From Dimorphilus gyrociliatus (lineage: Eukaryota; Animalia; Annelida): a stretch of 64,000 bases of DNA. The notes under the pieces were generated by a model, which was given only the letters and a program-made list of their open reading frames with translations, was not told where the DNA came from and searched no databases. Shown piece after piece: positions 2,734 through 52,470 of the stretch. Position 1 is the first letter of the stretch; every line of letters starts with the position of its first letter. Location of the stretch: NCBI GenBank assembly GCA_904063045.1, contig CAJFCJ010000001.1, positions 1,054,001 through 1,118,000 of the forward strand, in the 5' to 3' direction. The position numbers and the translations under genes were made by a program.

Positions 2734-3679
2734 ATGCTTAGGAAAATGAAACTTTGTAAAGTTGTCGCGATATTAGAAAATTTTGCTCCACTAAAACTTG
2801 CCGGCTCATGGGACAATGTCGGACTATTAGTCGAACCATCTTCTCACACTGTTAAGAAAATGCTTTTGACCAATGATTTAACCAAAAGAGTCCTAGAAGA
2901 GGCTATAGAAACCAAATCTGATATGATATTAAGCTATCATCCACCAATTTTTAGCCCATTAAAAAGATTGACCCAATCAAGTTGGAAAGAAAGAATCGTC
3001 ATAAAATGTCTAGAAAATAAAATAGCTGTTTTTTCACCACATACTTCCTGGGACGCAATTGAAGGTGGTGTTAATGATTGGCTTATAAAACCATTTGATA
3101 AGATAATACAGAATTGTGAAGCTGTTGAAAAAATTGATGGAATTGATTATTCAACGGTAATAAGCTTACTACTTATAGTTTCTATTAGACTAATAAATAA
3201 ATTTTCAGACTTCTACTAAAGTTGGCTATGGCAGACGTGCCAACTTGAATAAGTCAATAGCTTTGAAAGATGCCATAGAAATTGTAAAAACTCATCTAAA
3301 CATGCAAAATGTTAGACTTGCTTTCGACAACAAGAAAACAATTGGTAAATAAAGCTGTCATCTCTTAATTTCTCTTTTTTAAATCTCTGCTTCTTTGTTA
3401 TTAACAGATGATATTAAGATAAATTCTATCGGAGTATGTGCCGGCTCTGGTGCGAGTGTTTTGCGTTATGCCAAAGCTGATTTGTTAATATCTGGTGAAA
3501 TGTCTCATCATGAAGTTTTGAACTACGTTGCTGGTGGGTCTTCAGTTATACTCTGCGAGCATTCGAACACTGAAAGAGGATTTCTAAAGCATATACAAGC
3601 TAAACTTTCGGAACAACTGGAAGACTCTATAGAAGTGTTGGTATCGTCCACAGATGCCGATCCCTTACAAATTGTTTGA
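2734..3679 (+). CDS. NIF3L1: NIF3-like protein 1; exons 2734-3156, 3209-3344, 3408-3679 (276 aa)
   Basis: Motifs APLKLAGSWDNVGLLVEP, SYHPPIF, SPHTSWD, GVCAGSG, SGEMSHH and CEHSNTERGFL; GT-AG introns with compatible phases. Confidence 0.95.
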
Positions 3680-3758
3680 ACTATACGAGTTAAAGTTATA
3701 TCTACATGTCATTTTTTAATTTAAAATCATCATTTTTTTTTAAATATATAACCTAAAT

Positions 3759-4511
3759 ATGTATTTTGTTCTTTTTCTATTTTCTATAGGCAATGTAATT
3801 TTAACAGAAAATCACCTTTTGAGAAAAACACATGTGTGCATCTGGAATGCTAAGACGAACAATACCTCTCTATCATTTGTGGGACGATTCAATTTGAACA
3901 TTTGGCGAAAGGAAAATTATAATTCGAATTATTATAAATATCTATTCTGTCCTCCAGCAGAATTATCTCGTAACGTATATTGTTGTCGTTTTAAACATAG
4001 TATTGAAGAAGCTGGTTTAGAATGTTGTAGAGATGATGAATATTTTCGATCTCTTGGTTCTCATTCTGCTGGAAATCGGCTAGCAGCCCTTGGATTATTT
4101 ATTTTTATTGTTCTTTGCGTTCTATGCGCACTATGGATAACAATAACTCTAACTAAAAGACATCCACCGCGGATTACACCGAATAATGAGAATAACTGGA
4201 ATTCAGAGATAATTGTTCGAAATGTGCCTTCAAATGAACAAGTAAATCTTTTTCCGTCTGCAGGAATAGCATCTTTTAGCAGAAAACCTCCGTCTTATCA
4301 AACCTTATATCCTAGATCACAGGAATCAAAGAGTGAAAGTACAATGGATCCCTCTTCGATTGGATTAGGAGTAAGCAGTCCATCCCCGGATGTAGGTGAT
4401 ATTCTCAAAGAGAGGAGAGAAAGAAACTTATTAGACAATTCTAGCACAGAGACGAGTACAGTTTATTCAGCTAATAATTTTGAATCTTCTCCCGCAAAGT
4501 GCGAGGCATAA
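3759..4511 (+). CDS. Shisa/WBP1/VOPP1-like single-pass membrane protein with Cys-rich ectodomain and cytoplasmic PPxY motif (250 aa)
   Basis: Hydrophobic N-terminus, then C..C...YCC...CC, a TM helix (LAALGLFIFIVLCVLCALWITI) and KPPSY in a Ser-rich tail. The start codon is uncertain because ttttctatag at about 3790 looks like a splice acceptor. Confidence 0.6.
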   Translation: MYFVLFLFSIGNVILTENHLLRKTHVCIWNAKTNNTSLSFVGRFNLNIWRKENYNSNYYKYLFCPPAELSRNVYCCRFKHSIEEAGLECCRDDEYFRSLGSHSAGNRLAALGLFIFIVLCVLCALWITITLTKRHPPRITPNNENNWNSEIIVRNVPSNEQVNLFPSAGIASFSRKPPSYQTLYPRSQESKSESTMDPSSIGLGVSSPSPDVGDILKERRERNLLDNSSTETSTVYSANNFESSPAKCEA

Positions 4512-4605
4512 AAAAGTTAATCAAATTACATTTAAAATATGAAAGCTATTGTTGTTAACAGAGCAAAAAATCTAATTGCAGGAATATGATTAGGGAAGTC
4601 TGGAA

Positions 4606-7600
4606 TTACAACTTTTGGGGTAAAATATGAGGTCTCGCTGCAAAATGTGTATCTGCAATATTAATATGATATTTGGCATTCTTATCCATAACAAATTCAT
4701 TTGTGACTGTAGATTTTCCATCTTTATTCGATACGAATCCAAGACAGACGTGTTTCTTCAGAGTAAATCCATAAGCAGCAGAAGTTACCCATCCAACCAA
4801 TTGATTATTTCTGTAAATAGGCTCTCCTCCCCATGGCCAAATATCGTGATCAACATTATGATCGGTTAGGACGAATTGAACGAGACGTTTTTTAATGCCC
4901 TCCTTCCTTTGTTTGATAAGAGCTTGTTTACCAATAAAGTCCGCACCCTAATTAAGAAAAAAACAAAAAAACCAATTAAGCCTAAATGAGAGTTTAAAAG
5001 TTAAACATTTCAAGAAAATAAGTGTCTTACATCAAATTTCACACGAAATTCCCTACCACATTCTAATGGAGTTACTACTGGTGATAAATCGGTTCCCCAA
5101 TATGCAAAGAATCTTTCAGTTCTTAATGTTCTTAAAGCATAATATCCTGCATTTCTTATTCCATAGTCTTTTCCTGCATCTAAAATGCAGTCATATACAT
5201 GTAAGGCATATTCCGAGGGAACATAGAGCATCCAACCATCTTCACCAGCATGAGTTAATCGCATAGCAACTATTCCAGAAGCCTGACCAACATCCATTAC
5301 TTGGCAGCTCATTGCCTTAAAGTTTGTTGAAGACAGCGAAATATCAGTAAGTTCCGACAAAACTGCATGTGCCTTTGGGCCAAGGAGATTAATTGCCGCG
5401 TACATGGATGTCACATCCGATACCTAATAATATATAAAACGAAAACGGTCTTTTAAGAGGTTTATTTTTTAGTTTTTAAACAAGTACCTGAACAGATCCG
5501 TCTGTCGGTAAATGCTTTCTTAACCAAGCAAGTCCTCGGGTTTGTTGAGTGGTAGGAGCTACCATAAAAAATCTATTTTTGGCCAATCGAATAATAGAGC
5601 AGTCGTTTTCAAAACCTCCTCTTTCGTTAAGCATTCCAGTGTGAACGACTGAGCCAATTTCACCATCAATATCATTGGCACAAACATATTGGAGAAAATC
5701 AACAACTTCTTTATCTGCTGACTTTATGTAAATATTTCAATTAAGGAGTTTTTAATCTGTTAAATAAAAATATTTTCATATTCATGAAATACCTGCAATT
5801 CAAATTTTGTAAAAGTTGACATATCAATAACGCTAACTCCTTCTCTGCATGCACGATATTCCGTTTGTACTTTTTCAAACCAGTTTGGCTTTTTGTAAGC
5901 ATTAGTAGGCTCTCTAGGAACTTCAAGTGAATTTGAACCTATTTGATATGAGAAGAGAATGTTTTTAGTAGTTTTAAGACAAACGATATAAGATATTTAT
6001 AAAGTTCACGATAAGTGCATTAATTTGCTTAAAAAATAAAAAAGAGTTAAAAAGTTTATAAGTCACCCGAATACGTGAACAGAGAACTATCACTATTATC
6101 AAAATAAAGCGCTCTCTCGAATCCCATTATTTGGCCCATTTGCATTCCATTTCTAGTTAATCTAGGATATAAACTAGATGTTCTAAGTCTTCTACCTCCT
6201 TTATACGCAATCTCAGGACCTACTAAAGCGTGCAGTCCTGGAAAGAAAAACGGTGCCATTCAACAACACACAACTAAACTAGATTAATAAATAAGGGGCG
6301 TCAAAATTCGAAAACAGTTACAACATTAAGAGAATCTTACATCCTGGACTTTCGGCTCCACTGGCCAATTTATAAGAGTCTCCATTTGCCGTCGTTTCAA
6401 AATAAACAGGTCTTTCGTACCCCATCATTTGTGCTAATTTGGCATCATTTTCATATCGACAATATAGAGGTGAAAGTCTGAGTTTTCTTCCTCGATTTAA
6501 CTCAAAGATATTTCCAGCTCGAGAAGCTAATCAGAATTATAGTTTCAAAAATAGACGCCCCCACCAAAAGATACTTACCGGGGATTTCCTTAACTCTATC
6601 CCTTAAAAATTTTCTATTATTATGTAAGTCTACAAAACGTCGGCAGTCTAAAGGTAAAATATTTTCTTTTACATCCCCATCTATAATCCAATCTGATATC
6701 AGATTTCCAACTCCTGCTGAATTGGCAATTCCAGTTGAGTTCATACCAGCGGCAATGAAATAATTTGATATTTCTGGAGCTTCACCTAAAATCGCTTTAC
6801 CTACAAAATGAGTCAGTGAAAAATATCATAAATATAAGTACAAATGAAACACTTAAATTTCCTATCTAAAAGTTACAAAGGGTATATATACCGTCTGGAG
6901 TAAAACTTTCTGGCCCGTTATACATTTTTCGTACTTGTGCAGTTTGTAATGAAGGAAATCTAAGTAAGAGTTGTTCTAAAATTGGCCCAAAGTGATCCCA
7001 ATCTTCAGGTAATAGACCGAATTCAAATTTCTCTGGCACGCCGTCGTGAAAGCATGGCTTAGCTTTAGCTTCAAAACAACCACCTAACAATCCACCACTC
7101 CATTCTCTAGCATAGATTGATCCATCATAATCTCTTATGACAGGCATCATTGGATAAACATCAAATGGTTTTGTAACAATGTAAAAATGTTCGCATGAAT
7201 GTAAGGGTATTCGAACATTAGGTGAACTTTTTTCGCCTAAGAATCTTGCCCACTGAAACATATTCATATTTTATCTGCTTAACTGATAAGCTTCGTTTAA
7301 ACTACCTGTCCTGTGCAATTAACAAAAGTTTCGCAATCGATTTGTCCCTTATCTGTTACAACTCCGGACACTTTATTGTTTTTAGTTTGAATTTCTTCGA
7401 CTCGGACTTGCTCCTGAATTGTTACTCCTTTAAGAAATAATATTATCTTATTAGTTCAAATGAATCTGATTGTTGATAACACAGTTATGATAATCTCGTA
7501 GAAAAAAATTATCTTTACCTAGTTGTTTTGCTTTACTTTTATACGCCATTGTTAAATCGGAGGGACTTAAAACTCCATCAGACGGGACCCACACACCCCC

Positions 7601-8365
7601 TATCAACCCTTCAGGATTAAGAAGGGAGCATTTTTCTTTAAGTTCCGATGGTGATAATACTTCAGCATGTATACCCATGGCCCTAAACAACAAAATATAT
7701 AGATTTCAATTGTAAACATAGGCTGTAGAATATCTTACTTTGCATTTACAAAAGCCCTTTTATAATAAGTCATTCTGCTTGCAGTTCTTGCTAAATATAG
7801 CGACCCACATTCTTTCCAACCTGAAATTCAAGTTTATTGAACAATAAATTAAATAAATCATTTTTTAACAAAGAAATTTGATAGAATTACTTATTCCTAA
7901 TTCTTTTTCCAAATCAGTGTAAAGGTCTCGACCATATTTCGAGAATTTTGATTCAATAGAAGTTCCACGAAGCTGGCCAATTAAACCAGCAGCATGCCAT
8001 GTCGTACCACAAGTTAATCTTTAATATCGGTTGCAAAAGGTATTTGGGGATAGGAGATTGTTATAATTGTGAAAATACAAACTGTCCTTGTTCCAATAGT
8101 ACAACATCGCTGACACCTCTTTTAGCTAAATGATATGCCAAAGAACATCCTACAACGCCTCCACCAGCAATTACAATCTAAAATGGACAGACATTATGAA
8201 ATTTTTCTGTTCTTTATAAATAGCAATTTCACTAACTCTACTTGAAGATGGAACTTGCTGTTCTTTAAATCTAAGAGAACTGCATAAGCTAAAATGCCTT
8301 AAAATTTTATTGCTGATTAACAGATGCTTATGTAAGCCTAAGGCCTTTCCATGACTTGACAGCAT
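4606..8365 (-). CDS. PDPR: Pyruvate dehydrogenase phosphatase regulatory subunit (DMGDH/SARDH-family flavoprotein), multi-exon
   Basis: Mitochondrial-type leader; [17 protein letters not shown] (FAD site), [25 protein letters not shown]. The C-terminal [31 protein letters not shown] and [17 protein letters not shown] match PDPR rather than DMGDH or SARDH. Confidence 0.85.
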
Positions 8366-8849
8366 CCTTCGGCGGTGAACGAGCTACATTAAGCTTCAAT
8401 GAAAGCTCTTTTCATTCTTCCTATATATTATAAGTTAGTATCGTCTGCTAAATCTTCCGATTGGCTTCTACCGAAACCATACTATCTAATTGTTTGGTTC
8501 CGTATTCCTGAAAAAAATTTAAAGAGACTCTTATGTTTGATATTGTTCGTACTCTGTACGAAAAGGTTTTTGTATATCTTTAAATTGACGACATTGACAA
8601 TTACTTTTTCGAAACAGAAATATTCAATAATAGCAAAAGGAATATGACATGAAAAATGTTAGGTTACAAATTTATTATAAATTGTCATGGCCACATTTTT
8701 CTTTAATGTTATACCATTGTAAAAAACAAAACAAAAAATCCTACAGCTGTTATCAATATTTATAATAATCTATTGAAAACTGGTAAACTTCATCAAATCT
8801 GTTTTTCCTTTTCTTATTGAAAAAACTATATTTCAATAGCATATCCAAA

Positions 8850-9536
8850 ATGGATGAAAATAGATTGGTTAGAAACGTATTTGAAACTCTATCTGAGCCA
8901 CTTACAGATAAGTTAGAACCTCAGTTTATAACTCCTTGTTTGATATCAAAAGGTGTCTTAAGCATCGACGAACAAGCTGATGTTTTATCAAATTCCACAC
9001 GACGACAACAAGCTATTTGTTTGATTTCATTCCTGTCTCGCAAAGATGTAAAAGCTGTGGAGGCGCTCTGCTCCTGTTTATCGAGAAATAATGATACAAA
9101 GCTTGCAAGCGAGATAGTAAGAGTTTTCAAAAATGTAAAAGAGAAAATTCAGAACGAAGAAAAAAGAAATGACATTACGGACGCTTTCCAAGAGTATCAA
9201 ATTGAAGAATTACTAAAAACACTAAATGAAGAAGACTTGGAAAAAAAAATAGGTGACAAGCTGTATTTTGAAATGGCTAATAATATGACCAAATCAGAGA
9301 TACAAAAATCCCTCTTAGATTCAGAGGTACTGAGGATGGTTGATTTTGAAGCCGTTGAGACTAGCTATCCTACAGATGTGTTTAGGCAAAAATATAAATT
9401 GATTGACAGTTGGTTTGCCAGACAACCAGAAGAACTCAATCTGAAAGACTTTATAGAAACTATTAGAAAGCGCATTCCATATAGTGATAATTTCAAGACA
9501 GCTATTTCTCAATATGTGAAATCAACGAAGGCTTAA
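8850..9536 (+). CDS. Intronless death-fold adaptor: N-terminal CARD plus putative C-terminal death domain (RAIDD/CRADD-like architecture)
   Basis: LEPQFITPCLISKGVLSIDEQADV...RRQQAICLISFLSRK...LCSCL...KLA fits the CARD pattern. The C-terminal helical region with KYKLIDSWF resembles a death domain. ATG at 8850. Confidence 0.6.
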   Translation: MDENRLVRNVFETLSEPLTDKLEPQFITPCLISKGVLSIDEQADVLSNSTRRQQAICLISFLSRKDVKAVEALCSCLSRNNDTKLASEIVRVFKNVKEKIQNEEKRNDITDAFQEYQIEELLKTLNEEDLEKKIGDKLYFEMANNMTKSEIQKSLLDSEVLRMVDFEAVETSYPTDVFRQKYKLIDSWFARQPEELNLKDFIETIRKRIPYSDNFKTAISQYVKSTKA

Positions 9537-9734
9537 AAGCCTTAAATAACAATAATTTATACTATTTGTTTGTTTGATCAAATGATTAGATCACAAATTT
9601 TTTTCAAATCTTGATTGTCTAATAAAAACAATAACTAAAATATCAAAACTTCATTAAATGCAATTTGAAAACAGGAACCGGAAATAGGCTGGGATGTCTG
9701 CTAAAGGATATCTAATAAGCCAAAACAATTGGAA

Positions 9735-10574
9735 ATGTCTTTCAATGAGATATACGAACGTTATCGGGATGGAAGAATATTTGTTGGAAACCTACCCAAA
9801 TCAATCAAAAGTAAAAGATTAGATAAAATGTTTCGAAAATTTGGAGAAATTGAATTTATTGATGTCCATGACGGGGGCGAAAGAGGGCCTGCATTTGCTT
9901 TTATATGTTTTGAAGATCCGCAGGTACCTTAGTCATTTATCTACACATATTAATATTAAATTTATTAATGAAGTAACTCAAATTAAAATACTGAATCGTT
10001 TTTTTATAATTCATGAGATTTGCTTTCATTTAATATTTCATTTTCAAAAAGGATGCTGAAGATGCTATTCATGCCCGAGATGGCTATGATTATAAAGGAT
10101 ACAAACTGAGAGTAGAATTTCCAAGAACGCCACGAGATTATGTACCTCGAAGAGACCCTACTATTGATCCAAATCGGGATAGATCTAGATCAGGTTCAAG
10201 ATCACCAAAATCACGACGGTGGTGTACTGGAGCTGGGCCTCCTATGCGTCGACCTGATCAGCGGGTTATAGTTTCAGACTTACCTCCTGGGACGACATGG
10301 TATGACTTGAAAGATCACATGCAGGTATTGACATATTTGTACTCTAAATATTCAATAATAGAATTTAATTTAGGAGGCAGGAGAGGTATGTTTTGCTACT
10401 GTTTACGAGGACGGAAATGCTGGATTTGTTGAATACTTTCGCTTAGAAGATATGAAAGAAGCAGTAAGGAAAATGGACGACACGAGGTTTATGTCCAGAG
10501 AGGGGACCATATCATATATCAGAGTCAGAGAGGATGAAAAATGGAAGAAAGACGATGAACATAAAGATGACTAG
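9735..10574 (+). CDS. SRSF1/SRSF9 (SF2/ASF)-like splicing factor with two RRMs; exons 9735-9923, 10052-10324, 10374-10574
   Basis: [46 protein letters not shown], pseudo-RRM [50 protein letters not shown]. Confidence 0.88.
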
Positions 10575-37481: not shown

Positions 37482-40400
37482 ATGAAGGAGGAGAAAATTC
37501 ATTCCCAAAGTACAATTTCACAATTCGACAATCATGTGGTTAAAAAGGCAAAAATTCTAAAAACTAGCAGCTGGCTGTCGCAAACTTGTACTGTTTTTTT
37601 CCTGGTTTGTCATATGAAGATTCACAAATGGAAAAGTTTCATAAAGGAAGTTGTTTATTCGATCGGTGGCGCTCTTGTACTACTAATTTTCTCCCAAAAT
37701 CTAAAGTCAACGCATATACAGGAATTTTACGATGTTGACAGGGAAATTCAACCATTGGAGGTATCTATTGACAAAAATTGGCATTGGTAAAGAATGGATA
37801 AAAAGAGTTCTAATAATATAAAACCCTTAGGTAAGAGGATTACTGATATCTCCCAACACAACAGTCATCAGATCTTTTATCAAGTCAATAAACTTAGATA
37901 TTCTAAGGTTAAAAGAATTCACTTATATGAACGAAAGTCAATTTGAAAGTATAAAGAACTTTAAAGAAAAGACAGCCATAATCTTCCATAACTTGTCTAC
38001 TGATTGTATAAGTTATACCATCCGAATGCCTGCTTGGAAGATTGCTTCAACCAATCTAAAGTCATGGAATTCTTTGAGTAACTACTGTAGTGAAAAGAGA
38101 AGGACGTCTCCGTCCGAATGTCCAACTGATTCGTACATTCGTTCAGGATTTTTGCACTTGCAACACGGAATTTCATTGCAGTTTCTAAAAAAATTAGGCT
38201 AGTCATTCTTTTACTTCTCATTCTTTAAAAAGGAAAATTTAACCTTAAATTATCTTTCTCTCTCCTCATCTTCTTCTTCTTAAATGTTACATTACATTAC
38301 AGCTAGGAAGAGGGGACTTACAATTAAGTTATCACTTCAAAGATTTCCCAAATCAGAATATGTGCATATTTCAAATAACTTATATCTAGTTCAAATTCTC
38401 CTTACTTTAATAATATTATTAAATTTTGGTTTGTTAATGAGGCATTTAGCTTCTGAACTGGCATCGGGCTTCGAAAGATCTCCAAAAATCTATTCATTTA
38501 CTAACTCGCTAAGACCGTCGAGTTACTGGACAGCTAGAATCTTAGCTATTGTCATCTTTCTTCAACCGGCTGCACTTATTATATCTATCTTCCTTAGTGT
38601 TCTTAAAACTTTTGAGCAACGGATTGCATTTCATATATCATTATTTATGTCCTTTTCTATTACAATGGCAAGTCTCTCCGCATTAATAGCAAACTTAGTC
38701 AGGAGTCCAGCCAAAGTAAATTCATTTGTTATTGGATTTATCTTTACTATGGTATGGCCATTTCTTATTGTTGCTGTTTATCCTACTTTAACTGAAGCGT
38801 TTCCTTTCTATCGTAAATGGTTTATTGTCACCACTCCCTTAAGCGTATTTGCAGCTGGATTTTACCAGGTCAATTTATAAATAATTAAATAATTAAGCCT
38901 CTTTTTTTTATTCTTAGCTCTCCTTCCTTAATAGATTCTTACTAGTATTTGTTTAAATAAGAAGCTCTACTGGACGGAAGGGGATTTTCCGGTTTTACTC
39001 TGCATCTCCTGCCATATTATTTATGGCATTTTACTACTTTTAGTTGTGATTTGCATGGAGAATTTTACGGATAATAGAAGGACTAGAATAGTTTGGAAGA
39101 GAGTGTGTTCCTGTTCAAATATTACTTGTCAAACCAACGAAGAGATTACCTTAGATGAGAAGGGCGACCAAAACATTATATGGTACGTTTCTGAGTTAAT
39201 TCATAAAGTTCCCTTGTAATTCACCGTTTGAAATTCAATGCCTTCTTTTTTTAAGCTTGAGGAATGTTTCAATGATTTATAAGAAAATAGGGCAAAGGAG
39301 GGTTACTGCTCTTGAAGATCTTAATCTAAGACTAACTGAAGGTAAGATAATGGTTCTCTTCGGTCATTTGAACTCCGGAAAGTCAACTTTAATTCGTATC
39401 ATTTCGGGAAGAGAGAGGCCAACATCTGGTAAAGTAATCTTCCATGGTTACAACTGGCCTTCAGATATTTACAAGGCTATCGCAACTATACCGGAAAGAT
39501 CGGATCTGTATGATTGGTTAACGCCGTACGAAATACTAAAGTATTACGCTAGAATTAGAAATGTAGACATAGTCGATCAGCATTTATTAATAGAAAATCT
39601 CTTGTTAGAATTAGGTAGGACTATTATTTGTTTATTAACGTTTTAGAGCGTAAATTCTATCAAACAGCCATTATGGACGTAGCCCATTCACCTATTTATG
39701 AGTTGAGTAAACATGATGAAAAGAAATTAAGAATAAGCCTAGCTTTAATAGGTCATTCTAAAGTTCTATTACTCGATGAACCCCTTCTTAGCTTAGATCT
39801 AAATGGAAGAAGAGCTGTTTGGCAGCTGTTAAAAAAGCACAAAAAGGGCAAAATTATTCTAGGTCTGTGGGAGACATACTTATATCCTTTCAGTTTTTTC
39901 TTTATATTCTATCCTATTTCTTATTCTTTTCTATCAATAAAATACTTTTTAGTTACAACGCAATTTATGAATGAAGCAAATCTATTCTGTGATGAAAAAG
40001 GCATTCTCTATAGGGGCAAAATTAAATATTGGGGTACAACGGACCGTTTAAATGACATATTCAAATTAGGATACTTAATTAAGTTTGTTTAAGAAGGATA
40101 TATTAAATCTTACTTGTAAACGTATTTTTCTTCTTTAAATTATAGGTTTAACTTGATAAATGATAGTGAAATTGACGAATTACATCAAGTTGTGGAACAG
40201 AATGCACCAGACGCTAAATTACAAGCCAGAAGCCAAAATTATCTTTGCTATAGAATACCAAAATCAAAAATTGATCAAATTTCTCTTCTCTTTTCAAAAT
40301 TAGAATCAAATTCTAGTCATTCTAATCAAGATTCTAGTTTATTGAATAAGGCGTCTTGGTCATCCGATAGGTGTCAGACTAGCAGGTATATTGCAATTTT

Positions 40401-43400
40401 ACTTTTAAAGTGTTTACTTTTTTTCTGCTTTCTAAATAGACTTAACTCCTCTTGGGCTGAACCAAATATTGAACATATGAGAGATGATTTAGAGTTGAAA
40501 GACTTTATAAGATTTGCTAAGAGAACCATTATTGAAGAAGCTAGAATTCCATACTCGAAAACTGTAGCAGCTTCATTTAAAATTCACAACTGTTCCGTTA
40601 CTTTAATAACGTTTGAGAGCTGTATCTCTCAGATTCTTGTTGAGGAAGCTAATCCATTTGAATCTAGGACTCGACTTTCCGAAGAGATGAAAAGGATAAG
40701 TTGGGCCAGGAAAACATATCATTCGACTGATGATCCTGGTCTCTTAGACGATGTTTTAGATGGTAAAGGATTGATAGATAGTCCACCAACTATGCACACA
40801 GATGGGGAAATGTCTGAAGAGTCTGGAACTTCATACCAAAAGTTTCGACATCAGGTTCAAAAAATTTGGTGGAACGGAGAGAGAGTGCCATTTTTTTACG
40901 CTCAAATTCAACGATTGATATTTCTTTTGTTGGCTAATATCCAGTCCGATTTTTATCCATCTCTATTATCGATTGGTCTTTTAGTAATCCCGGTTTGTTT
41001 TATCTGGTTGGGATTAATAATTGAAACTTGGTATCCAATAAACGAACCTAAATCGGACAGCCTAAAAATTGATTCTTTCATTTACAATTCAAGACCATTA
41101 TTAATAAATTCACCTAAGCGTCTTCCAAACTATCTCATGGATTCGTTAGCGAACGCATCCGGTATAAGATTGACCAAATTTTTCAGATATGATATAACAG
41201 ATATAAGAAATATAAAACCGCAAGCTTATGGCCTAGATTTTAATGATTTTTTACTTAGTAAAAATGGCAGTATTAGAACAGAAGTAGCTTTAAACTTTAA
41301 CGACTCAGAAGTTCATTCTCCCGCTATTGTTCATAGAGCTTTGATGGGAGGGTTAGCTGGAGTTATAACGAATGGTCGTTTAAATTCCTCTAATATAATT
41401 GTTAACAGTCACCCATGGAAAGAAGAAAGATCTTTCTTCGAAGATCACGCACATCTATCTGCTACAATTTTAGTTAATTTCATGATTGGTCTACTACCAG
41501 CGTTAAGCTTGAAACGTTTGGTTCAGCAAAATCAAATTCGAATAAGATTGACATTACTAGGGATAAACCGCATAGTTTTCTGGTTAATGACATTAATTAC
41601 GGATTTAAGTGAAATTTTTCTCATATTCGCTTTATTTGGTTTCTTGATAACGTCTTTTCTTGATCAGAATTTCACAATACAACGCTTTTTATTGTTGGGA
41701 TGTAAAATTTGTTCAACTTTACCCTTTGCGTATATTGTTTCCTTTTGGATAAAAAATTTTGGTGATGCTGTTTTCTATTGCGTCGCTTTAACTACGTCTC
41801 TAATTCTTCCTACGTTTACATTATTACTGTTTCTATTATGGGAAAGGGAGGACTTATCACTTATAGTTGTTGCTATCTCTTCTCTTCTAATCCCTCAATT
41901 TCACATTTCAGATCAGCTTGCAATTTATTTATCATTAAAACTGGATAATGTGACCTTTTCCTATATTCTTTTCATATCTCTTGGACCAACTATAATTCAC
42001 TTAATTGGTTTTCCATTTTTTATTCATCTACTTGAATTGAAGAGAGCTTTCGGCATGGAATGGAAGAGATCGTTATTTATTACTTTGGGCCTGAAAAAGG
42101 TAGAAGTTGATGCTACAAACGATACACAATGGGATACCGAAATTTTAGATAAAGATATAAAGACGGAATATATGACAGTTGAAAAGTGGCGGAAATACGA
42201 AAACAGAGAATCAACAGCTGCAGTAGTATTAAATAATGTTAGCAAGTTTGAAAAGGATTCCTATGTAGATAATATATCTCTGTACCTAAAGAATTCTGAC
42301 ATTTTTGGTCTAATAATGCCTAAAACTTCAAAGAGTACTATCTTATTTGATATAATTAGTGGACAATCGACAATCGACTTTGGGGAAGTTTTCATAGACG
42401 ACATATTGCTGTATAGTGGAAAAACTGATTTACTTCCATGTAATCCGAATTTATTAAAGAAAGAACTGCTCGCTGTTTCTCCTGCAAAAGGTGCTTTTAT
42501 ACCCTGTCTAACAGTCATTTCAAATATCCAATTATTTGCAAGACTAACTGGCTATCCTAATAAGAATCTTAGGGAAGTTACCGATTTCTTTCTTGAGGTT
42601 TTCTCTTTAAAGCAGCAAGCTGATACAAGAGCATGCTTACTTGAGAGAGACTCGAAAGGATCGCTAAATCTCTGTATAACTCTTCTACAAAGACCAAAGA
42701 TTTTGATACTAGACGATCCTTTCTTTGGGATGAGTAATAAGACTATTAAAACTATGAAAAGTATACTTAAGGTATTCGTTGAAGTTGGTCGAATGACAGT
42801 CCTTATGTCGGCTAGAAGCTTGCAGGAAGTCGAATCATTTTGTACAAAGATTGCATTTATGAATAATGGCCGCTTTTTTAGTATTGGAACTATAGATTCT
42901 TTGAGAAAAAAACACAGTAGAGGAAAGCAATTAAAGTTTAGACTAAAAGAAAATTTTACACTAGAGCAATCACTTCAGATTCAAGCTCTTATCCTTGAAA
43001 TTATCCCTGAGGCTATAATCTCGGAACAATATAGTAATTTCATAGTTTTCAATATTCCAGAGGATAACGGAGTGAATTACGGTGTATTATTCAAATTGCT
43101 CGAATTAAGTAAAAGTATAATTCAATACGAATCATTCGAAGTTTGTCAAAATTCTCTTGGTCGAATGTTTTGCCAATTTGTGTAAGTTTTTTTTTAATCA
43201 AAGCGAATGATACAGTCTATGTAAATTACCACAATTGTCTTTCTTTTTCACTAATAAGCTACCACTCAAAACAAACTGAAGGAGTTGAAAGGAGAAGTGG
43301 GAAGAAGAGAAACATAGTTACTAATGCAACAAAGATAATTCCAGCTAAAGATATGCTATTTAAGAGTATTTCTGGAATTGAACCCTTGAATCGTCGTAGA

Positions 43401-43481: not shown

Positions 43482-44010
43482 TTAAACTATCTCTTTTTCT
43501 TAATTCAATTTTCTCTTTCCATTTTCTTACATTTCGAATTTTTGATCTAATAAAATAATCTATTTAGTATACATTACAAATGCAACCGCAAACAAATAAT
43601 GACCGATAGATGGTGCTAGAGTGTAAAATCTGAATTTCGTTAGATGCAGTATGAATGTGGGCGAAAATACTTCTTGGTCTCTAAGTCTCGAAAATATTGT
43701 GAAATAACAAGATTTAGTATAGACATACAAAGTAATAAAAGGACTCAAATAAAATTTATCTAGTTTGTTATTTTAGGTAAGTTTTTACATTTGAAACCTT
43801 AAATGAAGAAATTATGGATACAATCGTCAGCGGGCTCTGGAATAGCCAATTAACCGCTTCAAAAGAGGTGTTAAATCGACTATTTATAGGATAAGGCTTA
43901 TTACATAAAAGAAACGATGGTGCACTAGTATCTAGAATTGGAAGCGAAAGAAGTGCTTTTTTTCTCTCAGCAGGTGAAGCTAAGAAGAAAAACTAAAGAT
44001 AAAGAAAAGC

Positions 44011-47000
44011 ATGCAAACTTCTCCACTCAGGATTCGTCGTCTCAGATCCCCAAATGGCTTACAAGATTATAGGAACCAGAGAATTGACAGAAGAACTGGC
44101 CGGACAAATACAATACATGGTCTAGATAAAGTTTTCGATTTTGAATCATCACCTTTACGTAGGTAATGTATCATTTATTTCTTTTGTTATTAAAAACAAC
44201 AAAGATCATCGCTATCTCGAAAGAATATCTATTTAACTTTTTGCTTATGAGAGGATGAAAACAAAATTGCTTTCATTAAGTATAACTTGTTATCATAAGA
44301 GAAATAGGCCTAAATTAAATCCTGAGGGCACTTTAGCATTTAAAAAAGAAAATTAAAGACCACGAAACATTTGGCACTCAAGAAAAAATGCCGACTGCAA
44401 AATATTATGCTGCTTCAGTTAGCAGCTTCGTTAGAACCGCTTTGTTAAATAGAAACCAGCGTTTAACGGTAACGAGGCGTCCCTCGAGTAGAGGCAACCC
44501 GGGTTCGTAATGACGCTTCTATTTTTTAGAATATTTTGGGCGTCCCTTCTCCTCGTTTCGACCGCCTTCTTCTTCTTCTTAGCTGCAAATTCCGTCCGAA
44601 AATATGCAACCGCCGTCCGAATTAGAAGAACAATCGTTGAGCATAGGAAAACGTTCCCGTCTCCTTTTTTAAGTATCTGCCAGGCGTCTTTGCGGTTGAG
44701 TAGCATTTATAATTCTCATCTTATCAAGAAGAATGCGATTGTCGATGAACTAATGGCGGTGGGAGCACATCGGCAAGTCGACACCATTCTCCAGTAAGAT
44801 TGATTAAATAAGTGGCCTCAGTAAACTTTTCAAATTGACCGTCATATTTATGGAAATGCAGGTGCCAGACCGAAGGCTCCGAATGCAAATGGAAAACTAC
44901 GAGTAGCCAAGCAGGAATCTGCTTTACTACACCACTCCATAAAAAAGGTTCATATTCTAATCTCTTAATACATCACCGATAAGGATTATCTTTAATCCAG
45001 GTTTATCATTATTACTTAATGCTGAATCTTATGAAAATTCCCCCGTCGAACTCGGCAACAAGGGTTTGAAAATGTATGTTGGCGAAAGAGAGCCTATATT
45101 GGCTTACCGAAATGCTCTAAGCTTGATCCCTGGACGACAATTCAGCGTCGGAGCGACACCGATAATTTACGATTCAACAGAGTGTTCTGAAAAGTCTGAA
45201 AAATGCTTGGCTGCTTGTTTAATCGAACATCAGAAGAAGGATTGCGCATGCGCCGAACCATTCTCAAAACTTTTAGGTCTCAACATATATTTTTATATCA
45301 TTTTACATATGTATATTGACATCTAATATCTCTAAGCGTTCTTGACAAGCGGTTTATCTGTTGATAGATGAACGGGTTCCCATCTGCAATCTATCTACTT
45401 ATCGAACTTGTATCTCTCGCGTAAATAGTAAGTATACTACTGGAGTCATTTCGTGATTAATCACGTGACTAACCTTTAAATACCGTTTACTACACGCTTT
45501 TTTCAATTTTCTCAACTTAACCGTTTCCCATGTTAATAATTTTCTTTCATATGATAATTTCTCTAAGAGACGAACAGATCTTCTTTCTCTCCCCTTTTTT
45601 TTCTCCTCCATTTTTTTATCCTATCGCACTCTAAAAGATTTGCGGCTTGTCACATAAATTGAGTGTCTGATGGTTCTTGTCATGTGAACATCTCTAAAAA
45701 ACAACACCCGTTGCAATCTATCATCTTTATAGCGTTCCAACTACAAACTCGGCCTGTAAAATGGAATACTTTCGCGCGCGATTGCAAACAGCAAATTGCC
45801 CTTTAAAAAGATAAACAACGCTAGCTTAACCCGGTTTATTTACGTTTCTCGCAGAGAATTGGCGTCCAAGATGTTCTTGTAAGAAAGCTTGCCGAAATCT
45901 TTCTTTCAAACTTCGATCATTATCAGTCGACGCGTTCTCTCGACCGGAAGTCGACGAATTGTTGGAAACTGGAGAAAGGCTTGAAGCGGGTTTTAGGACA
46001 GCTTTAGGTGTTAGAGATAAACTAAATAATTTAGATGACGACACAAAGGACTTTCGTCACCTTAAAGAATCGTTTGATATTAGTATAGCCGCCTTTGATA
46101 ACGCCATGCACAAGTTAAATAAAACAAGAAAGAAATTAAGGAAGTTAGCGGATGAAATAGAGAGAAGATCGGATTTCCACAAATTCCACACAAAACAAGA
46201 GCAGAAAACTCTAATTCGTGATGAAATTTTAGCACCTTGGTGGAGTTACCGCGAAAAATATCTTAATAAATTCGAATACAACGCTAACCAGGCTGCAATT
46301 GATTTCAATTCGAGTATCCAAGTGCTTTTGTCAAAGAAGAGTCGAACAACCAAAGAAATATCCGCTGCCATTTCCAAGAGAACATTGACATTAACAAGGA
46401 TGATGGCCCAAAACGCCATAACGAAAATGGTGTCTTTCATCTCGCTTTTAACTAAACGTAAGGAGGTGTCTAATGCTTTACTACCATTCGACGCGTTAAG
46501 AAAAATCCATAACCAGACATTAATCAACTCCATTAACGAGTGCCTTATGCAAGTTGTAATCTCCGCCTCCAAAGCCCTAACCCTCACAAATAAGGCCGAT
46601 GTGGAACCTTCAAATTATAGCAAAAAAAATGCTAGCGACGCTCAAATCTGTATTTCTATGATGATGAAAAATAGTAGGGCTTTATCAATTTTGAAATATA
46701 AATTAGAAGAGAGCTTTACCAACTTCGATAGAGACTTAAAATCATCCGATAGCACTTTGGAAGATAAAAGTAATTCAGTTAGACGTCTATTAGGTAATTT
46801 CTTACAAAAATCAAATTCTATTGAAGAGTTATTTAATAAATTAAAATTACGATTAAATACGGATGTAAGAAATTTTATATTGGAATATCAAAATTATACG
46901 AAGAACTATCACCTGACTAAATTAAATATTAAGGTTAAAGGTATTTCAAACTTTGAATTTGACACTCAAAATATTTTAACGGAGTGGAAATTGAAAAGCG

Positions 47001-47788
47001 ATAACCTCTTAGAAGTAGTAACAAAATTTGGCGACCGCCTAACGTCTCTTTGGCGTCTAATTCAGGCGGACGGTAACACGAAAACCTATTACGAAAGAAT
47101 CTCGGCCGATATCGACAATCTGAATTATTCATCAAAAGAGGCGATACAACTAGCTCGATTAGCCCGCTTTGACGCTCCAGACGCTCAAAGGATTCCAAAA
47201 GCCGAATGGAAGAGCAGATTAAATGCCGATGTGGACAAGCTAGATGACAATTTAAAACGAGTCCGATCAACTCTAGATGGCGTTCGTCGATTAGCAAAAA
47301 ATGATATATTTTTGAGGTCCAGCGTCTCTTTCGCCAAGACATTGCGATTGGTGGAGGCGAAATTGAGAAAATTCGCCGAGAAATGCGAACTGTCAGGCGA
47401 ATTTATAAGGTAATTTATATTCATTATCCGCGCATATTCTATAGGCGAGTTTCTTTTTTATCTAGGCAAAATCTCGTCCAAGTTGATGTTCATCTAGAAG
47501 ACTATGTCGAGAGAATTAGGGAGGTGTGGGATTATGAATGGACAGACTTAATATGTAAGAATGAAATTAGCACATGTTTTCATCGACTAATTACATTTAA
47601 TCAACTAAACAGGCGACATTGGGGGCTGCCTAGCATTACTTCTTGGAGCGAGTGCTTTATCTATGGTCGATCTTTTCGATTATTTATTATTTCGCAGACG
47701 GAACAAAGAGCATGAAAGGCGTCTAAACGACGTCGAATTTAGTCCTAAAAAAACAGAGAATAAGGCTGATTGTGCAACTGAAGTTTGA
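44011..47788 (+). CDS. DEG/ENaC channel subunit 1 (885 aa); exons 44011-44162, 44530-44793, 44862-44947, 45001-45276, 45368-45427, 45855-47409, 47466-47554, 47613-47788
   Basis: N-terminal TIHGL motif, TM1 RIFWASLLLV, FPSPFLSIC, GICFT, GLSLLLN, Cys-rich thumb ending CSCKKAC, beta11 NLVQVDVH, TM2 CDIGGCLALLLGAS. Exons sum to 2658 nt in one open frame. Confidence 0.88.
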
Positions 47789-49327
47789 TTTTGACGTAAC
47801 CGGTGCTCTCTACGTCATATTTTTTTATGTGCCTGATAGAAATCGAACAAGCTTTTTTACTCAATCATTCCGATTTGTTTGGATGATTTACAGCTTAGCG
47901 AGATTTAGACGTCTGTTTATATAGACAACTGTTAGAATTTCATGATTACGTGCACTTTTTGTATACAGTATAATTTCTCCTGTTATTTTTTTCCTATACA
48001 AATACGCCATCTGTGTGTAACAGCTATAAAAAAAAATCATATCTTTTCTCTCCCACTCCCCCGTCTAATTCTTACAAAGCGATTCTTTCCGCCCCCTGCC
48101 ACCCCCTTCGTCAAGAAACTATAGTATAGAATGAAAATTTAATCAGAATTTGTATTATTTTTCAATTTATTTCTTGTATTCAATTTGTAAAGGAAATTTC
48201 CTTTTCTTTATCATTTTGAGCAAAAAGAAAGCAACCTTTATGATATTTATAGTAATTATCATTTTTCTTTCTCATCATTTTTCGTCATCTTTTTCTTGTC
48301 CCTTCCTCTAATTATCTTCAATTAGTAATATAACTATATAGTGAAAAATTCACAATATTAGTTAATTTCAGGGACGGAAGGCGTTAAATTTCCACTTTCC
48401 TTTATTTATAAACAAATTGATTAATATTTAATACGATAATACACAGCTTACTAATTAATTCATAAATACTTTAATAAAAAAATTGTTTACGAACCGAAAA
48501 TCAATATAATAAACAAAAGGAAAAATATTTCCTCCTTTCGCAGCTTTCTTTCTTTCCAGGAAAAAAGTAAGAAACAAACTAGTTAGGTCAATTTTTCTTT
48601 TCCAAAATATTTTTCTCATCTCTCTCTCTCTCCTTAACCTAACCCTTCCTCTGAAAAGAGAAATGATGGAAAATGAATAAACAACTTAATTGATTCTACC
48701 ATCTGAGGAGATGCTACTAATAAGATATTTTCTGTATAAATAAACAAGACAAAAATGTCTAGATAATTAAACGTGGTGAAAATAAGTACGTTATAAGACA
48801 CCATTGTATAAACAGCTTCTATCAATTATCTAAAAATAATGTTTAAACTACATTTATACTTTTGTTTATCAACGGATAGAAACGTTACACTCATATTTAA
48901 GTTCTCCCAATAATAAACTCATGATTGACTAATTGTTCAACAGTTCGATATGATTAATTTATTCATAGATCGCTTTTTTAGGATTTGTGAGAATTGTTAC
49001 ACGAAAGTTAGAAAGAAGAAATGTAGGAGATTATTAAAGTCTTATGGTTTCATTACGAAAATGGTTCTTCTCTCTTAGAGTTATATCCTTTCAAGGGTTT
49101 TATTGATATTGGATGTCAATTGATAAACTACACTCTGGCGATTCTAAATTGATATTTATAATTTATTAAGCGAAATTCTATGCCGCTAGGCGGAGTGGAA
49201 ACCACTGAATAGATATGGCGCTTTTGCGTTGTGAACATCCTTCATGCATATTTCATATAGAAAAAATGTCCATTGTTTGTACAAACCGGATTTATTAATG
49301 TGTTTTTTTTTTTAAATATTTGCTTAC

Positions 49328-52129
49328 ATGATTACCTTGAAGCCACCAGACTCGATGTCAGATAACGGCCGATTAGCAATGTCTAACGGAAACAATATCG
49401 AAAGTCACACAGATAATTTGAAGTTAGATTTTCCATCCATGCTAGATGATGAAGATGTTACTTGTTCAACTGAATTAAAAGCATCTTTTTCCAATTCATC
49501 ATTTCATGGAATCCCAAGAATTTATGGTAGAAAGTCACCAATAATTTGCAAATTCTTTTGGTTCCTTGTTACGATAATGGCATGTGGAATATTTTGTTTT
49601 TCAACTTATACATTAGTAAGCCATTACCTTGAGTATCCAACAAAAACAACTGTCAAACCGTATAATAATATATTACCAATATCGATATGCATAAAAAATG
49701 GGTAAGTATTTTTCCAAAAGAAGAGCAAACTCGTGTTAAGAATATTAATATATTGTTTTTTATGGTAAAAACATTTTCTTTTTTTAGAGAAAACGTGACA
49801 AATTCGAAATCATTCAATGAATCTTTCAGGTAATTTAAAATTAATCATCGAATTTTTATTATATTATTCTCTTCCCTATATAAAGATGTTTAATAAGAGA
49901 AACATTCGAAAATTGTAACATATCGAAGGGAACGGCTAATTGCTATAAAATTTCATTAAAAGACAGTATGTTGCTAACAATTGTTTATATATACTGTATA
50001 AAATTAAGGCGTCGTTTTTTTTAATAATATAGGGTTTACAGTGGATATAATAACATACAATAATATAGAATTATATATTCACCACGATTCTGGAGAAATA
50101 TGGAACAAAATTTCGAAACACGAAACATGCGAGATGGAATACTTAAAAGTAAGATGTTCAATCTATAGACTATTTAAAAAAGATACTATATCATGTAAGC
50201 CTATTGGAAACACACAGTATTAACATATGACAAACAATGTTAATGATATTCTTATTATATTTATATACAGTATGTAATTAATTCTATACATTGAGGTTTA
50301 TACCTAAAAGAGTTAACATTAAAATGTTGCACTTTGAATAGTCAGAATGTCCAGCAAAATATGGATAATTAACTCTTCTGTAAAAAAACGCATAACAATA
50401 GTCTAGCTATAATCTATTATCTGTAATAAAGCATAATTATATACCCGTTTATTTGTGCATATTTTTACATTTTTCTCATTGTCATTACACTTTTAAACAA
50501 TACGTTTCTTTTGTTTATAAATTGATTAATTAATTAATGCTTTAATACTAATTATGTTTCTTTTTTACCTTGTATATTATGAAAAGATTTCTTTTTCTGT
50601 TGAAATTTAGATTTTACGACTAGACGCTCCTTATGGATCATGCTCGAATAAAACCTGTAAACAGATAATAGTTAAAAACTACTGCAATAGCCGGTCCATT
50701 GACATTGCTGATTTATCTGCAATTTATTCAAATGCCACTAGATTGAAACTGGAAGTGGTGCAGAAAGATCTCTATAACGATTCCTTTAACAATTGTCAAA
50801 GAGAAATGAATCGTTTAGATGATTTCCTCTCTAAATACAATCTAAAATTAACTAACCGATGGAATTTTCACCATTCTATGCTTCAGCTACAACAAGTATA
50901 TTTTAATGAAAATTTTATTGAAAAGTGGAAGGTTAACTATCCCAATTGGGAGAAATTTTTCAATGATAAGTTAACTTTTGAGTACTATATTAACGTGTCG
51001 AAAATAGATGATGTTGTATTGGATAAAGATTTCATCAAAAACTTTATGTATATCTTTGTATTATCGAAAAAATTAATGATTAATCAAACATTTCAATTTA
51101 ATCATATTTTTGAAATGAATGATAAGGATACAAATGAGAAATATGAACAAAGTCTTCTAAGAAACGTCCTAAATAATTTTAATAATGAAAATTCTAAAGA
51201 TAAAGAAAAGATTAATCAATATATAAATATTTTGAAAATATTCTTTCAAGATATTGAAAATACAGTTCAGAATCAAGTTGAAGATTTTTATAATGAATTT
51301 CATAGTTTAGTTACAAGAGTTTTAAATTTTCATTCAAATTTATTAATGAAAGAAAAATCTATTAATGATGAATCTACTTACAAAAAGGAAATTGATAAAT
51401 TCAAAGTTACAGAAGAGAATTATCTAATTGAATTTAAACGGCTATTGGTGTTACATGAACCAGATTCTCTCAATAAACTAACAGAATTAATTAATAAGTA
51501 TGATATACAATCCGAAAAACTCTGGAATTTAACAAAAAAACATTATGGAACAATTCTAAAAGATTTTTATAGACATTTGGAAGACGATGTTTTCGAATAT
51601 TATAATACAAATGAACAGAGTCAAAGGGAGAAACTTTTAATTGGCTTTTCTAAATTGACCAACATTGATAAAGACATTCTGAAAACCTATGATAAATCAA
51701 GAATTTATAGTACATTAAATTATATGAGGTCTACAACACTGGATAAATTAACAAGTCATTTAAAACCGTTTAATGACGAATGTTTGAAATTAGTTGAAAA
51801 GCGAAAAGAATCTAATTACAAGTGAGCTTTGTGTTATATTAAAAATGTTTATTTTTAAATTTTTATTCAAATAGCGGCATGTCAATTATGACAATATTAA
51901 AACGACCTAGTTTTCTTTTCGAGGAAGAAGCAGAATTGACCCTTCAAGATCTATTAAGTAAATAGACTTTATTATTGATTTATAAAACAATATCAAAATT
52001 TTATTATGTACAGGAAACATTGGAATATATATGGTCATCTTCCTGGGAGCAAGCATTTTATCCTTAATAGAAATACTCGACTTTTTCTGTTCAGCCCCCT
52101 GTCGGATTGCCTACAATAAACGATATTAA
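49328..52129 (+). CDS. DEG/ENaC channel subunit 2 (673 aa); exons 49328-49701, 49788-49829, 49886-49965, 50033-50148, 50611-51821, 51875-51957, 52014-52129
   Basis: FSNSSFHGIPRI, TM1 KFFWFLV..HYLEYPTKT, NCYKI, LDAPYGSC, TM2 RNIGIYMVIFLGASILSLIEILDF. Exons sum to 2022 nt in one open frame. Confidence 0.85.
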
Positions 52130-52470
52130 TCTTATTTTTATTATGATCTTTTTTATTAAAAAGAAAAACATAATTTATAGTTGTTACTACTGAAATATCG
52201 GCTTTACCTCAATTCACGTTTTGTACTTATTTTTTAAACTTGTTCGAATCTGACTCCCCGCTCTAAAGTTTTGGCGCGAAACACGTGATGCAAATTTCCG
52301 GCGCTTTGATTTAGTTCGTTCTTGAATTATCGCTCAGTTTGAACCGTCTTTTTTTTATTATTGAAATACTTATAAATATTCAGTGATAAATACACAAAAT
52401 CAGAGGATTGATTGAATAATTAAATAATTTACCTATTTCAATAGTTTTTGAAATATTTGTCACCTTGATT

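Follow-up and report, generated by a model that had tools for sequence, protein, structure and literature searches.

In DEG/ENaC channels the finger, thumb, and palm convey gating by protons, peptides, proteases, and force, and, to our knowledge, every solved member assembles as a trimer via the conserved core. MEC-4/MEC-10 and ENaC combine paralogous subunits into true heteromers, and heteromer formation in these channels is independent of their extra domains. The canonical knuckle (helices alpha6-alpha7, as in ASIC1, ENaC, and FaNaC) lies after the CxCxxxC motif and beta10 and before beta11-beta12 and the second transmembrane segment (TM2). A knuckle helix of FaNaC forms part of the wall of the ligand pocket in the adjacent subunit (PMC11026163), and in alpha-ENaC glycans on the knuckle serve as matrix tethers (PMC6955349).

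We describe two adjacent DEG/ENaC genes of Dimorphilus gyrociliatus, both on the + strand (44011-47788 and 49328-52129 of the window, the whole stretch of 64,000 nucleotides that was analysed), whose knuckle occupies the canonical place in the fold but has a very different size. The spacing from CxCxxxC to the TM2 filter is ~548 residues in gene 1 and ~418 in gene 2 (the latter without the full motif), compared with 77-88 in canonical paralogs. The insert end nevertheless keeps the canonical knuckle-end pattern, an aromatic residue, I/F, and R/L followed by the beta11 hydrophobic run. The GRIP domain of ENaC and the extra domains of MEC-4/MEC-10 are likewise lineage-specific ectodomain additions that tune gating, but they lie in the finger or after TM1 rather than in the knuckle, are far smaller, and are not all-helical. 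The gene models comprise 865 codons (gene 1) and 673 codons (gene 2), with GT-AG at every intron:

44011-44162, + strand: gene 1 exon 1, N-terminus with HG motif; donor phase 2; open frame kept in L001
44530-44793, + strand: gene 1 exon 2, TM1 and beta1-beta2; Pfam ASC 22-78, E 3e-4; splice sites; dN/dS 0.17
44862-44947, + strand: gene 1 exon 3, beta-ball piece with Cys; entry phase 2, exit phase 1
45001-45276, + strand: gene 1 exon 4, beta-ball, palm, and shortened thumb; Pfam ASC 203-318, E 1.6e-4
45855-47409, + strand: gene 1 exon 5, CxCxxxC and beta10 (~36 residues), then predicted all-helical insert of ~490 residues (body from ~45941); donor phase 2
47466-47554, + strand: gene 1 exon 6, beta11-beta12; donor phase 1
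47613-47788, + strand: gene 1 exon 7, TM2 with G-A-S filter, C-terminal tail, and stop; Pfam ASC 432-455
49328-49701, + strand: gene 2 exon 1, N-terminus, HG motif, TM1, and beta1; Pfam ASC 2-72, 39.6 bits, E 4e-10
49788-49829, + strand: gene 2 exon 2, micro-exon of 14 codons
49886-49965, + strand: gene 2 exon 3, beta-ball piece with Cys; entry and exit phases those of gene 1 exon 3
50033-50148, + strand: gene 2 exon 4, beta-ball and palm
50611-51821, + strand: gene 2 exon 5, thumb/beta10 remnant (~40 residues), then predicted all-helical insert of ~364 residues (body from ~50731); donor phase 2
51875-51957, + strand: gene 2 exon 6, beta11-beta12; donor phase 1
52014-52129, + strand: gene 2 exon 7, TM2 with G-A-S filter and stop; Pfam ASC 432-455

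In each gene a single giant exon runs from within, or immediately upstream of, the Cys-rich stretch and beta10 up to the precise edge of beta11; the two genes also agree in four intron positions and phases. The preliminary description of this DNA had reported adjacent same-strand DEG/ENaC genes with a giant insert at the same position, a phase-2 intron after the insert, and a phase-1 intron before TM2; we find all of these in both genes, with the insert between beta10 and beta11, that is, in the knuckle. Searches with the two genes were run exon by exon. The matches to Pfam PF00858 (ASC) are collinear along the model; gene 1 exons 2, 4, and 7 score 20.4, 21.3, and 17.0 bits, each below the cut-off of 23.6 but with a rough sum well above it, and gene 2 exon 1 exceeds the cut-off by itself. 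Both genes encode HG before TM1, two transmembrane segments, and G-A-S in TM2, and the close relative keeps the HG and filter of both, except for G-G-S in its gene 2. The pair retains the HG motif, two transmembrane segments, and GxS filter that a working subunit needs. The finger and thumb are reduced in both genes, and the CxCxxxC motif before beta10 is present in gene 1; in gene 2 the corresponding stretch contains just three Cys and no CxC.

The order of an ABCA gene followed by the two channels is syntenic in the close relative, where the gene pair is kept, and we compared the insert exons with their orthologs there. We obtain dN/dS of 0.14 for gene 1 and 0.20 for gene 2, about equal to the values for the core exons. 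In exon 5 of gene 1, amino-acid identity to the ortholog is 78% and identities at the three codon positions are 86/90/65%, third positions changing fastest; amino-acid identity for gene 2 exon 5 is 45%. Gene 2 is the fastest-evolving gene at the locus, with saturated dS, and dN is about fourfold apart (0.11 in gene 1 vs 0.43 in gene 2). By these measures the two inserts are genuinely coding, and purifying selection acts on them as strongly as on the channel core. One could also suppose that gene 2, or at least its insert, is in decay or no longer functional: its fast evolution, low identity, and saturated dS, its collapsed finger and thumb, and the G-G-S of the relative would fit decay, but its 404-codon frame is open in both species at 26% GC (probability of no stop at its own composition, 7e-18), dN/dS is low, the splice sites of its seven exons are all GT-AG with phases that agree, and the HG motif and GxS filter are retained, so that we regard a decaying gene 2 as scarcely credible.

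The enlarged knuckle extends well beyond this pair. At least 19 other D. gyrociliatus paralogs have 430-560 residues from CxCxxxC to TM2, and in ~20 loci a gap of 1.3-2.8 kb interrupts the Pfam ASC match at model positions ~391/399; among annotated proteins, the ASC domain is likewise divided in two in DgyrCDS14464 (P0002, 905 aa) and DgyrCDS12248 (P0005, 953 aa). These insert-bearing paralogs (the two annotated proteins and L037-L054) share the insert site and size class, and their sequences align as long helical segments, like the AF2 prediction for genes 1 and 2. They differ from the pair in having a full finger and thumb and a strong ASC core (E 1e-62 to 1e-85); the ectodomain of genes 1 and 2 is much reduced, and their cores have diverged so far that exons taken singly fall short of the Pfam cut-off or lie close to it. 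A phase-2 intron at the boundary of insert and beta11 is found in gene 1, gene 2, L040, L046 (A3 clade, at the identical place), and L054, and is absent from L050 and L051; L054 also has the phase-1 intron before TM2, plus an intron before a PWG.C motif. Since an insert at this site recurs in 19 or more further paralogs, some of them with the same introns, the insert is by all appearances a family-wide "mega-knuckle" and no special mark of the gene 1/gene 2 pair.

An hhalign comparison of gene 1 with the A3 clade (E 0.0065) links only CxCxxxC, beta10, and the knuckle start, and short HMMs of the beta10 region give gene 1 15.5-17.6 bits for insert-bearing paralogs vs 14.3-14.5 for canonical ones, with gene 2 at ~1 bit on both, scores that do not separate the two groups for either gene. 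The best TM2-exon matches of both genes include L054, L049, and L037. Within the insert body, sequences of genes 1 and 2 are not significantly like those of the paralogs, except marginally for gene 1 with L050, an unlinked paralog: the alignment is collinear end to end with z 5.8-7.0 (reversed controls, <=1.7), and hmmsearch gives E 0.0013 at Z=1, but hhalign gives E 0.11. The gene 2 insert matches no other insert group (E ~1; z ~0.6 with L050), and hhalign between any two of the five insert groups yields E 0.1-0.44, none significant.

The preliminary description further held that the inserts of genes 1 and 2 align by eye, and that they represent an ancient domain retained after duplication in spite of very different base composition. 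The difference in composition is real (insert GC, 0.375 in gene 1 vs 0.260 in gene 2), and introns contrast likewise; the motifs that it quoted are also present where it placed them. The alignment itself did not hold up, as BLASTP between the inserts is non-significant (E 2.8-3.3) and the HMM-HMM comparison that it had named as the check gives no significant profile similarity (hhalign of two-species profiles, E 0.4, probability 0.1%; hmmsearch in both directions, E ~1 at Z=1), the outcome that it had itself named as refuting its reading. Alignment scores exceed those of reversed and column-shuffled controls by a small margin. Against shuffles, Smith-Waterman z reaches 2.7-4.5, with reversed-sequence controls from -0.9 to 3.7 and two of the four pairings above every reversed control; identical columns number 40, vs 34 when one insert is reversed and 21-39 in column shuffles (n = 12). 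The best alignment is collinear and contains all three by-eye motifs, its LW...Y region takes in the best-conserved block of each insert between species, and a Cys in a similar L-x-x-F-x-x-x-C context near the end of each insert is kept in both species; a second conserved Cys is at non-equivalent positions in the two. The by-eye matches are about what two K/L/N/E-rich helical sequences would yield. When the inserts of gene 1, gene 2, and L050 are aligned together, 11 columns are invariant (among them R-x-x-F-H and a Trp); we rejected this as evidence, reversed controls giving 6-12.

Since the inserts are real, selected, and located at an identical structural site with the same flanking intron phases, a common origin is likely on grounds of position. 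A duplication specific to the pair finds no support here: the core exons of genes 1 and 2 have no mutual match, although other paralogs are matched, and the cores are not nearest relatives at any exon. The argument for common descent of all inserts is drawn from position, introns, and marginal scores, and not from significant sequence similarity.

We consider it probable that the two genes are very divergent members of a lineage-expanded D. gyrociliatus group of DEG/ENaC channels in which the knuckle has been enlarged to an extracellular all-helical domain of 360-560 residues, and that the traits they share are inherited family architecture. The common site, size class, helical character, and intron phases would all have come down with that architecture, and the insert bodies would have diverged past detection by two-species profiles. 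Secondary structure predicted by AF2 is all helix in both inserts, with a similar number and order of long helices; the AF2 models were built on two-sequence alignments and their 3D arrangement is unreliable (pLDDT 39.5 and 47.2), so that only the secondary structure was used. The insert enters and leaves the fold at two neighbouring strands atop the palm, and we infer from this that the chain has to double back on itself, forming a helical bundle or hairpin that stands on the trimer. Attached directly to beta10 and to beta11-beta12, which lead to TM2, it would be well positioned to transmit binding or pulling forces to the gate. Such an insert may work as a module for sensing or tethering; it would not serve to pair the gene 1 and gene 2 subunits. 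If this is true, a branch with shrunken finger and thumb and a selected 360-560-residue helical domain on the strands leading to the gate represents a different way to build a sensor.

Independent expansion is an unlikely alternative, in which the knuckle loop is permissive and the gene 2 insert, perhaps with others, grew separately (for example, by runaway AT-rich helical extension), leaving non-homologous bodies. The isolation of the gene 2 insert from every other group, its being 126 residues shorter, N/K/I-rich, and encoded by 26% GC DNA, and the mutually non-significant hhalign scores of the five groups are what such growth predicts. It does not readily account for an exon end before beta11 at the same codon position and phase in gene 1, gene 2, the A3 clade, and L054, nor for the similar count and order of long helices, and divergence at this locus is fast enough to erase similarity, with under half of the gene 2 insert identical between species while dN/dS still indicates constraint.

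The reading favoured by the preliminary description, in which a homologous domain particular to the pair was kept since tandem duplication and the subunits co-assemble through it as a heteromeric channel, we judge very unlikely. Adjacency on one strand with synteny kept in the relative, the identical insert site with its four intron positions and phases, the collinear optimal alignment with z partly above all reversed controls, the conserved block in the LW...Y region, and the Cys near each insert end speak for it. Weighing against it are the non-significant BLASTP, hhalign, and HMMER comparisons with identical-column counts at the edge of controls, core exons that match other paralogs but not each other, the occurrence of the same architecture and introns in many unlinked paralogs, a gene 1 insert whose score with L050 exceeds that with the gene 2 insert, the fourfold difference in dN and the non-equivalent second Cys, and the assembly of solved DEG/ENaC trimers via their core. 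Co-assembly through the insert finds no specific support, and within the insert-bearing branch the pair is not special, the case for partnership coming down to adjacency only. A more elaborate version, to which we give still less credence, has the three knuckles intertwine as a stalk whose sequence sets subunit pairing, the slow-evolving gene 1 and fast-evolving gene 2 forming an obligate heteromer and the stalk linking the gate to an extracellular structure; if true, DEG/ENaC channels would have in the stalk a novel means of determining which subunits pair and of sensing force or ligands. We favour inherited family architecture over these readings, and the bundle or stalk picture of the insert is to be taken as a model.

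We searched for the insert more widely. A whole-genome search with both inserts as queries did not find a paralogous insert, and ESM Atlas look-alikes gave no usable match for either. Exhaustive HMMER with the gene 1 insert profile against 1.84 billion representatives returned nothing beyond the ortholog, save one doubtful match to a 2862-residue repetitive protein (E 1.5e-4 over 47 residues) that we take as spurious; by this profile, no relative of the insert body is detected outside dinophilids. None of the literature searched describes a giant knuckle insert. Ultra-conserved intronic blocks also occur at the locus, and Rfam (the whole window at the gathering threshold; 44150-45900 at an E-value threshold), tRNA, and inverted-repeat scans leave them unexplained. 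In word-based protein searches with the gene 1, A3-type, and L050 inserts, each covering 8000 candidates and saying little on other phyla, the matches listed are the queries themselves, orthologs in the close relative, and a single D. gyrociliatus paralog.

Two adjacent DEG/ENaC channel genes on the + strand, gene 1 (44011-47788) and gene 2 (49328-52129), each carry a giant helical insert at the knuckle site between strands beta10 and beta11, and we find that such a giant knuckle is family-wide in the Dimorphilus gyrociliatus genome. We read the three + frames and splice sites to build the gene models, which were then verified exon by exon; all searches used single exons, one at a time. Every intron is GT-AG, most of them 53-86 nt long, with three longer (367, 578, and 462 nt).

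Exons of the two channel genes
44011-44162, 44530-44793, 44862-44947, 45001-45276, 45855-47409, 47466-47554, 47613-47788; + strand; gene 1, 7 exons, 865 codons
49328-49701, 49788-49829, 49886-49965, 50033-50148, 50611-51821, 51875-51957, 52014-52129; + strand; gene 2, 7 exons, 673 codons

Collinear exons of both genes carry Pfam ASC matches, and in each gene an HG motif precedes TM1 and a G-A-S filter lies within TM2. Gene 1 retains a strongly reduced finger and thumb, and gene 2 hardly any of either. Exon 5 of gene 1, the giant one, begins with a CxCxxxC motif followed by beta10, a stretch that, together with the first knuckle helix, matches the equivalent stretch in nine paralogs (hhalign, E 0.0065), and that of gene 2 begins at a P-Y-G-x-C motif, after which come a remnant of the thumb and beta10. 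In both genes exon 5 closes with a phase-2 split codon immediately ahead of the beta11 hydrophobic run, beta11-beta12 occupy a short exon (89 nt in gene 1, 83 nt in gene 2), and a phase-1 intron lies ahead of TM2. The knuckle (helices alpha6-alpha7) is replaced or extended by an insert whose body has roughly 490 (gene 1) or 364 (gene 2) residues. These models bear out the preliminary description, which had placed the insert at the same site in both genes and had read the same two intron phases. An ABCA-type transporter, encoded in a single 1010-codon open frame (40153-43185; ABC_tran matches in the syntenic locus), immediately precedes gene 1 in the same orientation.

Both inserts are genuine coding sequence under selection. 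With the gene 1 insert as query, a word search matched one protein, from the Logan assemblies, where a 29.9-kb contig of a close relative (L001) is syntenic, carrying an ABCA gene followed by channels 1 and 2 and then the same downstream genes. Identity of the insert to the relative is 78% for gene 1 (86, 90, and 65% at the three codon positions) and 45% for gene 2, with Nei-Gojobori dN/dS of 0.14 for gene 1 and 0.20 for gene 2, the latter ratio being rough because dS is saturated; the TM1, beta-ball, and TM2 exons of both genes give the same values as the inserts (0.09-0.20). The stop-free frames of 527 and 404 codons have a chance probability near 1e-17 at these compositions. AF2 predictions from two-sequence alignments consist nearly entirely of long helices (30-60 residues each), with a tertiary fold that is unusable because pLDDT is 39.5 and 47.2. 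Each insert holds 6-8 N-x-S/T sites, several at conserved positions. In the relative's gene 2 the selectivity filter reads G-G-S, not G-A-S (L001 16396-16521).

We scanned the genome (77.9 Mb, 349 contigs), in which the window is C1:1054001-1118000, with the ASC model and obtained 108 exon-level matches. In about 20 loci the match is split, with positions 1 to about 391 separated from about 399-455 by a gap of 1.3-2.8 kb that is open frame for the most part. Furthermore, on the fetched paralog loci the number of residues between CxCxxxC and the TM2 filter (or exon end) is 430-560 for 19 distinct paralogs vs. 77-88 for canonical ones; the giant knuckle is therefore family-wide. The ASC domain is likewise split in two in P0002 (905 aa) and P0005 (953 aa), both annotated proteins. 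One paralog locus, translated, is 100% identical to DgyrCDS14464 (NCBI), which confirms the species as D. gyrociliatus. At two paralog loci, L038 (contig C116) and L042 (C146), the apparent open frames (1505 and 3790 residues) are masking artefacts over long stretches of N (2800-5200 and 3500-10000, respectively). A third DEG/ENaC gene about 17 kb past the window end (C1:1134706-1136164, - strand; L032/L056) is counted as canonical, without insert, because its ASC matches (positions 21-310 and 306-454) are contiguous.

The intron phases do not single out the pair, since they recur elsewhere in the family. In the insert-bearing A3 clade (13 genes), too, the insert exon finishes on a phase-2 split codon at this very position ahead of beta11. 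The paralog L054 shares with genes 1 and 2 the phase-2 intron, the beta11-beta12 exon, and the phase-1 intron preceding TM2, in the same arrangement, and has a further intron at the place matching the start of the gene 2 giant exon. The preliminary description had also held that the two inserts are homologous by alignment and were retained after duplication of the pair. The HMM-HMM alignment named beforehand as the refuting test found no significant profile similarity: hhalign of two-species profiles gave E 0.42 with canonical flanks and 0.40 without, BLASTP E 2.8-3.3, and hmmsearch of either insert profile against the other gene's sequence pair E 0.9-1 (Z=1). Among 1.84 billion representatives searched with HMMER, the gene 1 insert profile matched only its ortholog and one spurious repetitive sequence. 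Lenient Smith-Waterman alignment of the two inserts is collinear and includes the three motif pairs first pointed out, with z of 2.7-4.5 against shuffles across four species pairings; about 70 reversed-sequence controls, chosen because shuffling removes helical periodicity, range from -0.9 to 3.7 (mean near 1). A four-sequence alignment has 40 identical columns, compared with 34 after reversal of one insert and 21-39 over twelve rounds of column shuffling. Two small points favor likeness: the top-conserved block of each insert falls in the aligned L-W...Y region, and each has a conserved Cys near its end in a similar L-x-x-F-x-x-x-C context. The other conserved Cys of each insert sits at a nonequivalent place. 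As judged from sequence, similarity of the two inserts is marginal at best. A three-way alignment with a third insert, sharing an R-x-x-F-H motif and a Trp, was discounted (11 invariant columns, 6-12 in reversed controls).

Comparison of the insert groups with one another by hhalign was also nonsignificant (E 0.1-0.44), and the strongest weak signal obtained joins the gene 1 insert not to gene 2 but to L050, an unlinked paralog on contig C3. That pairing gives z of 5.8-7.0 (reversed controls 0.4-1.7), an hmmsearch E of 0.0013 at Z=1, and an alignment that is collinear from end to end (490 vs. 505 residues). Searches gave no sign that the two genes are sister duplicates: probed against the whole genome with its TM1 and TM2 exons, each gene matches other paralogs and not its neighbor at E up to 1, and six core exons per gene likewise fail to match the neighbor among all fetched loci and the window. 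Both are long-branch members of the family, and for the TM2 exons the nearest paralogs are L037, L054, and L049; a beta10-region HMM test assigns neither gene to the insert-bearing over the canonical group. Because the family often occurs in tandem arrays in this genome (e.g., four in a row on C20), adjacency is weak evidence of anything beyond old local duplication. Genes 1 and 2 as a partnered pair are largely unsupported. Heteromer formation through the insert is possible, with no specific support, and the fourfold difference in dN between the genes suggests no co-evolving interface.

Our best guess is that the insert is a sensor or tether module standing in for the reduced finger and thumb. 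Beta10 and beta11 are neighboring strands atop the palm, so an inserted domain would have to come back to its starting point, which would imply a helical hairpin or bundle on top of the trimer; attached to the strands leading down to TM2, it could pass on to the gate either binding or a pull. In FaNaC the peptide pocket is lined by the canonical knuckle (PMC11026163), which in alpha-ENaC bears the glycan tethers responsible for shear sensitivity (PMC6955349). We found no account of such a giant knuckle insert in the open literature; the D. gyrociliatus genome paper says of ENaC only that the repertoire is canonical for annelids, and cloned Platynereis channels have 508-614 residues.

In gene 1, noncoding blocks in introns 1 and 4 and at the 3' end (44300-44527, 45300-45500, 45700-45860, and 47700-48000) are 95-97% identical to the relative, far better conserved than coding exons (71-86%), with third-codon positions and other noncoding DNA at about 58-70%. 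Rfam and inverted-repeat scans left these blocks without explanation; intronic RNA, an alternative exon, or splicing control are candidates, and intron 1 contains a conserved 57-codon open frame (44337-44507). The difference in base composition between the genes noted at the outset holds in exons and introns alike: within this AT-rich window, GC is about 36-39% across gene 1 and 25-29% across gene 2, with a sharp step between 44000-48000 and 48000-52300. Since the step affects introns as much as exons (intron GC 34-35% vs. 21-23%) and is seen in the relative too, it reflects regional mutation bias, not codon choice.
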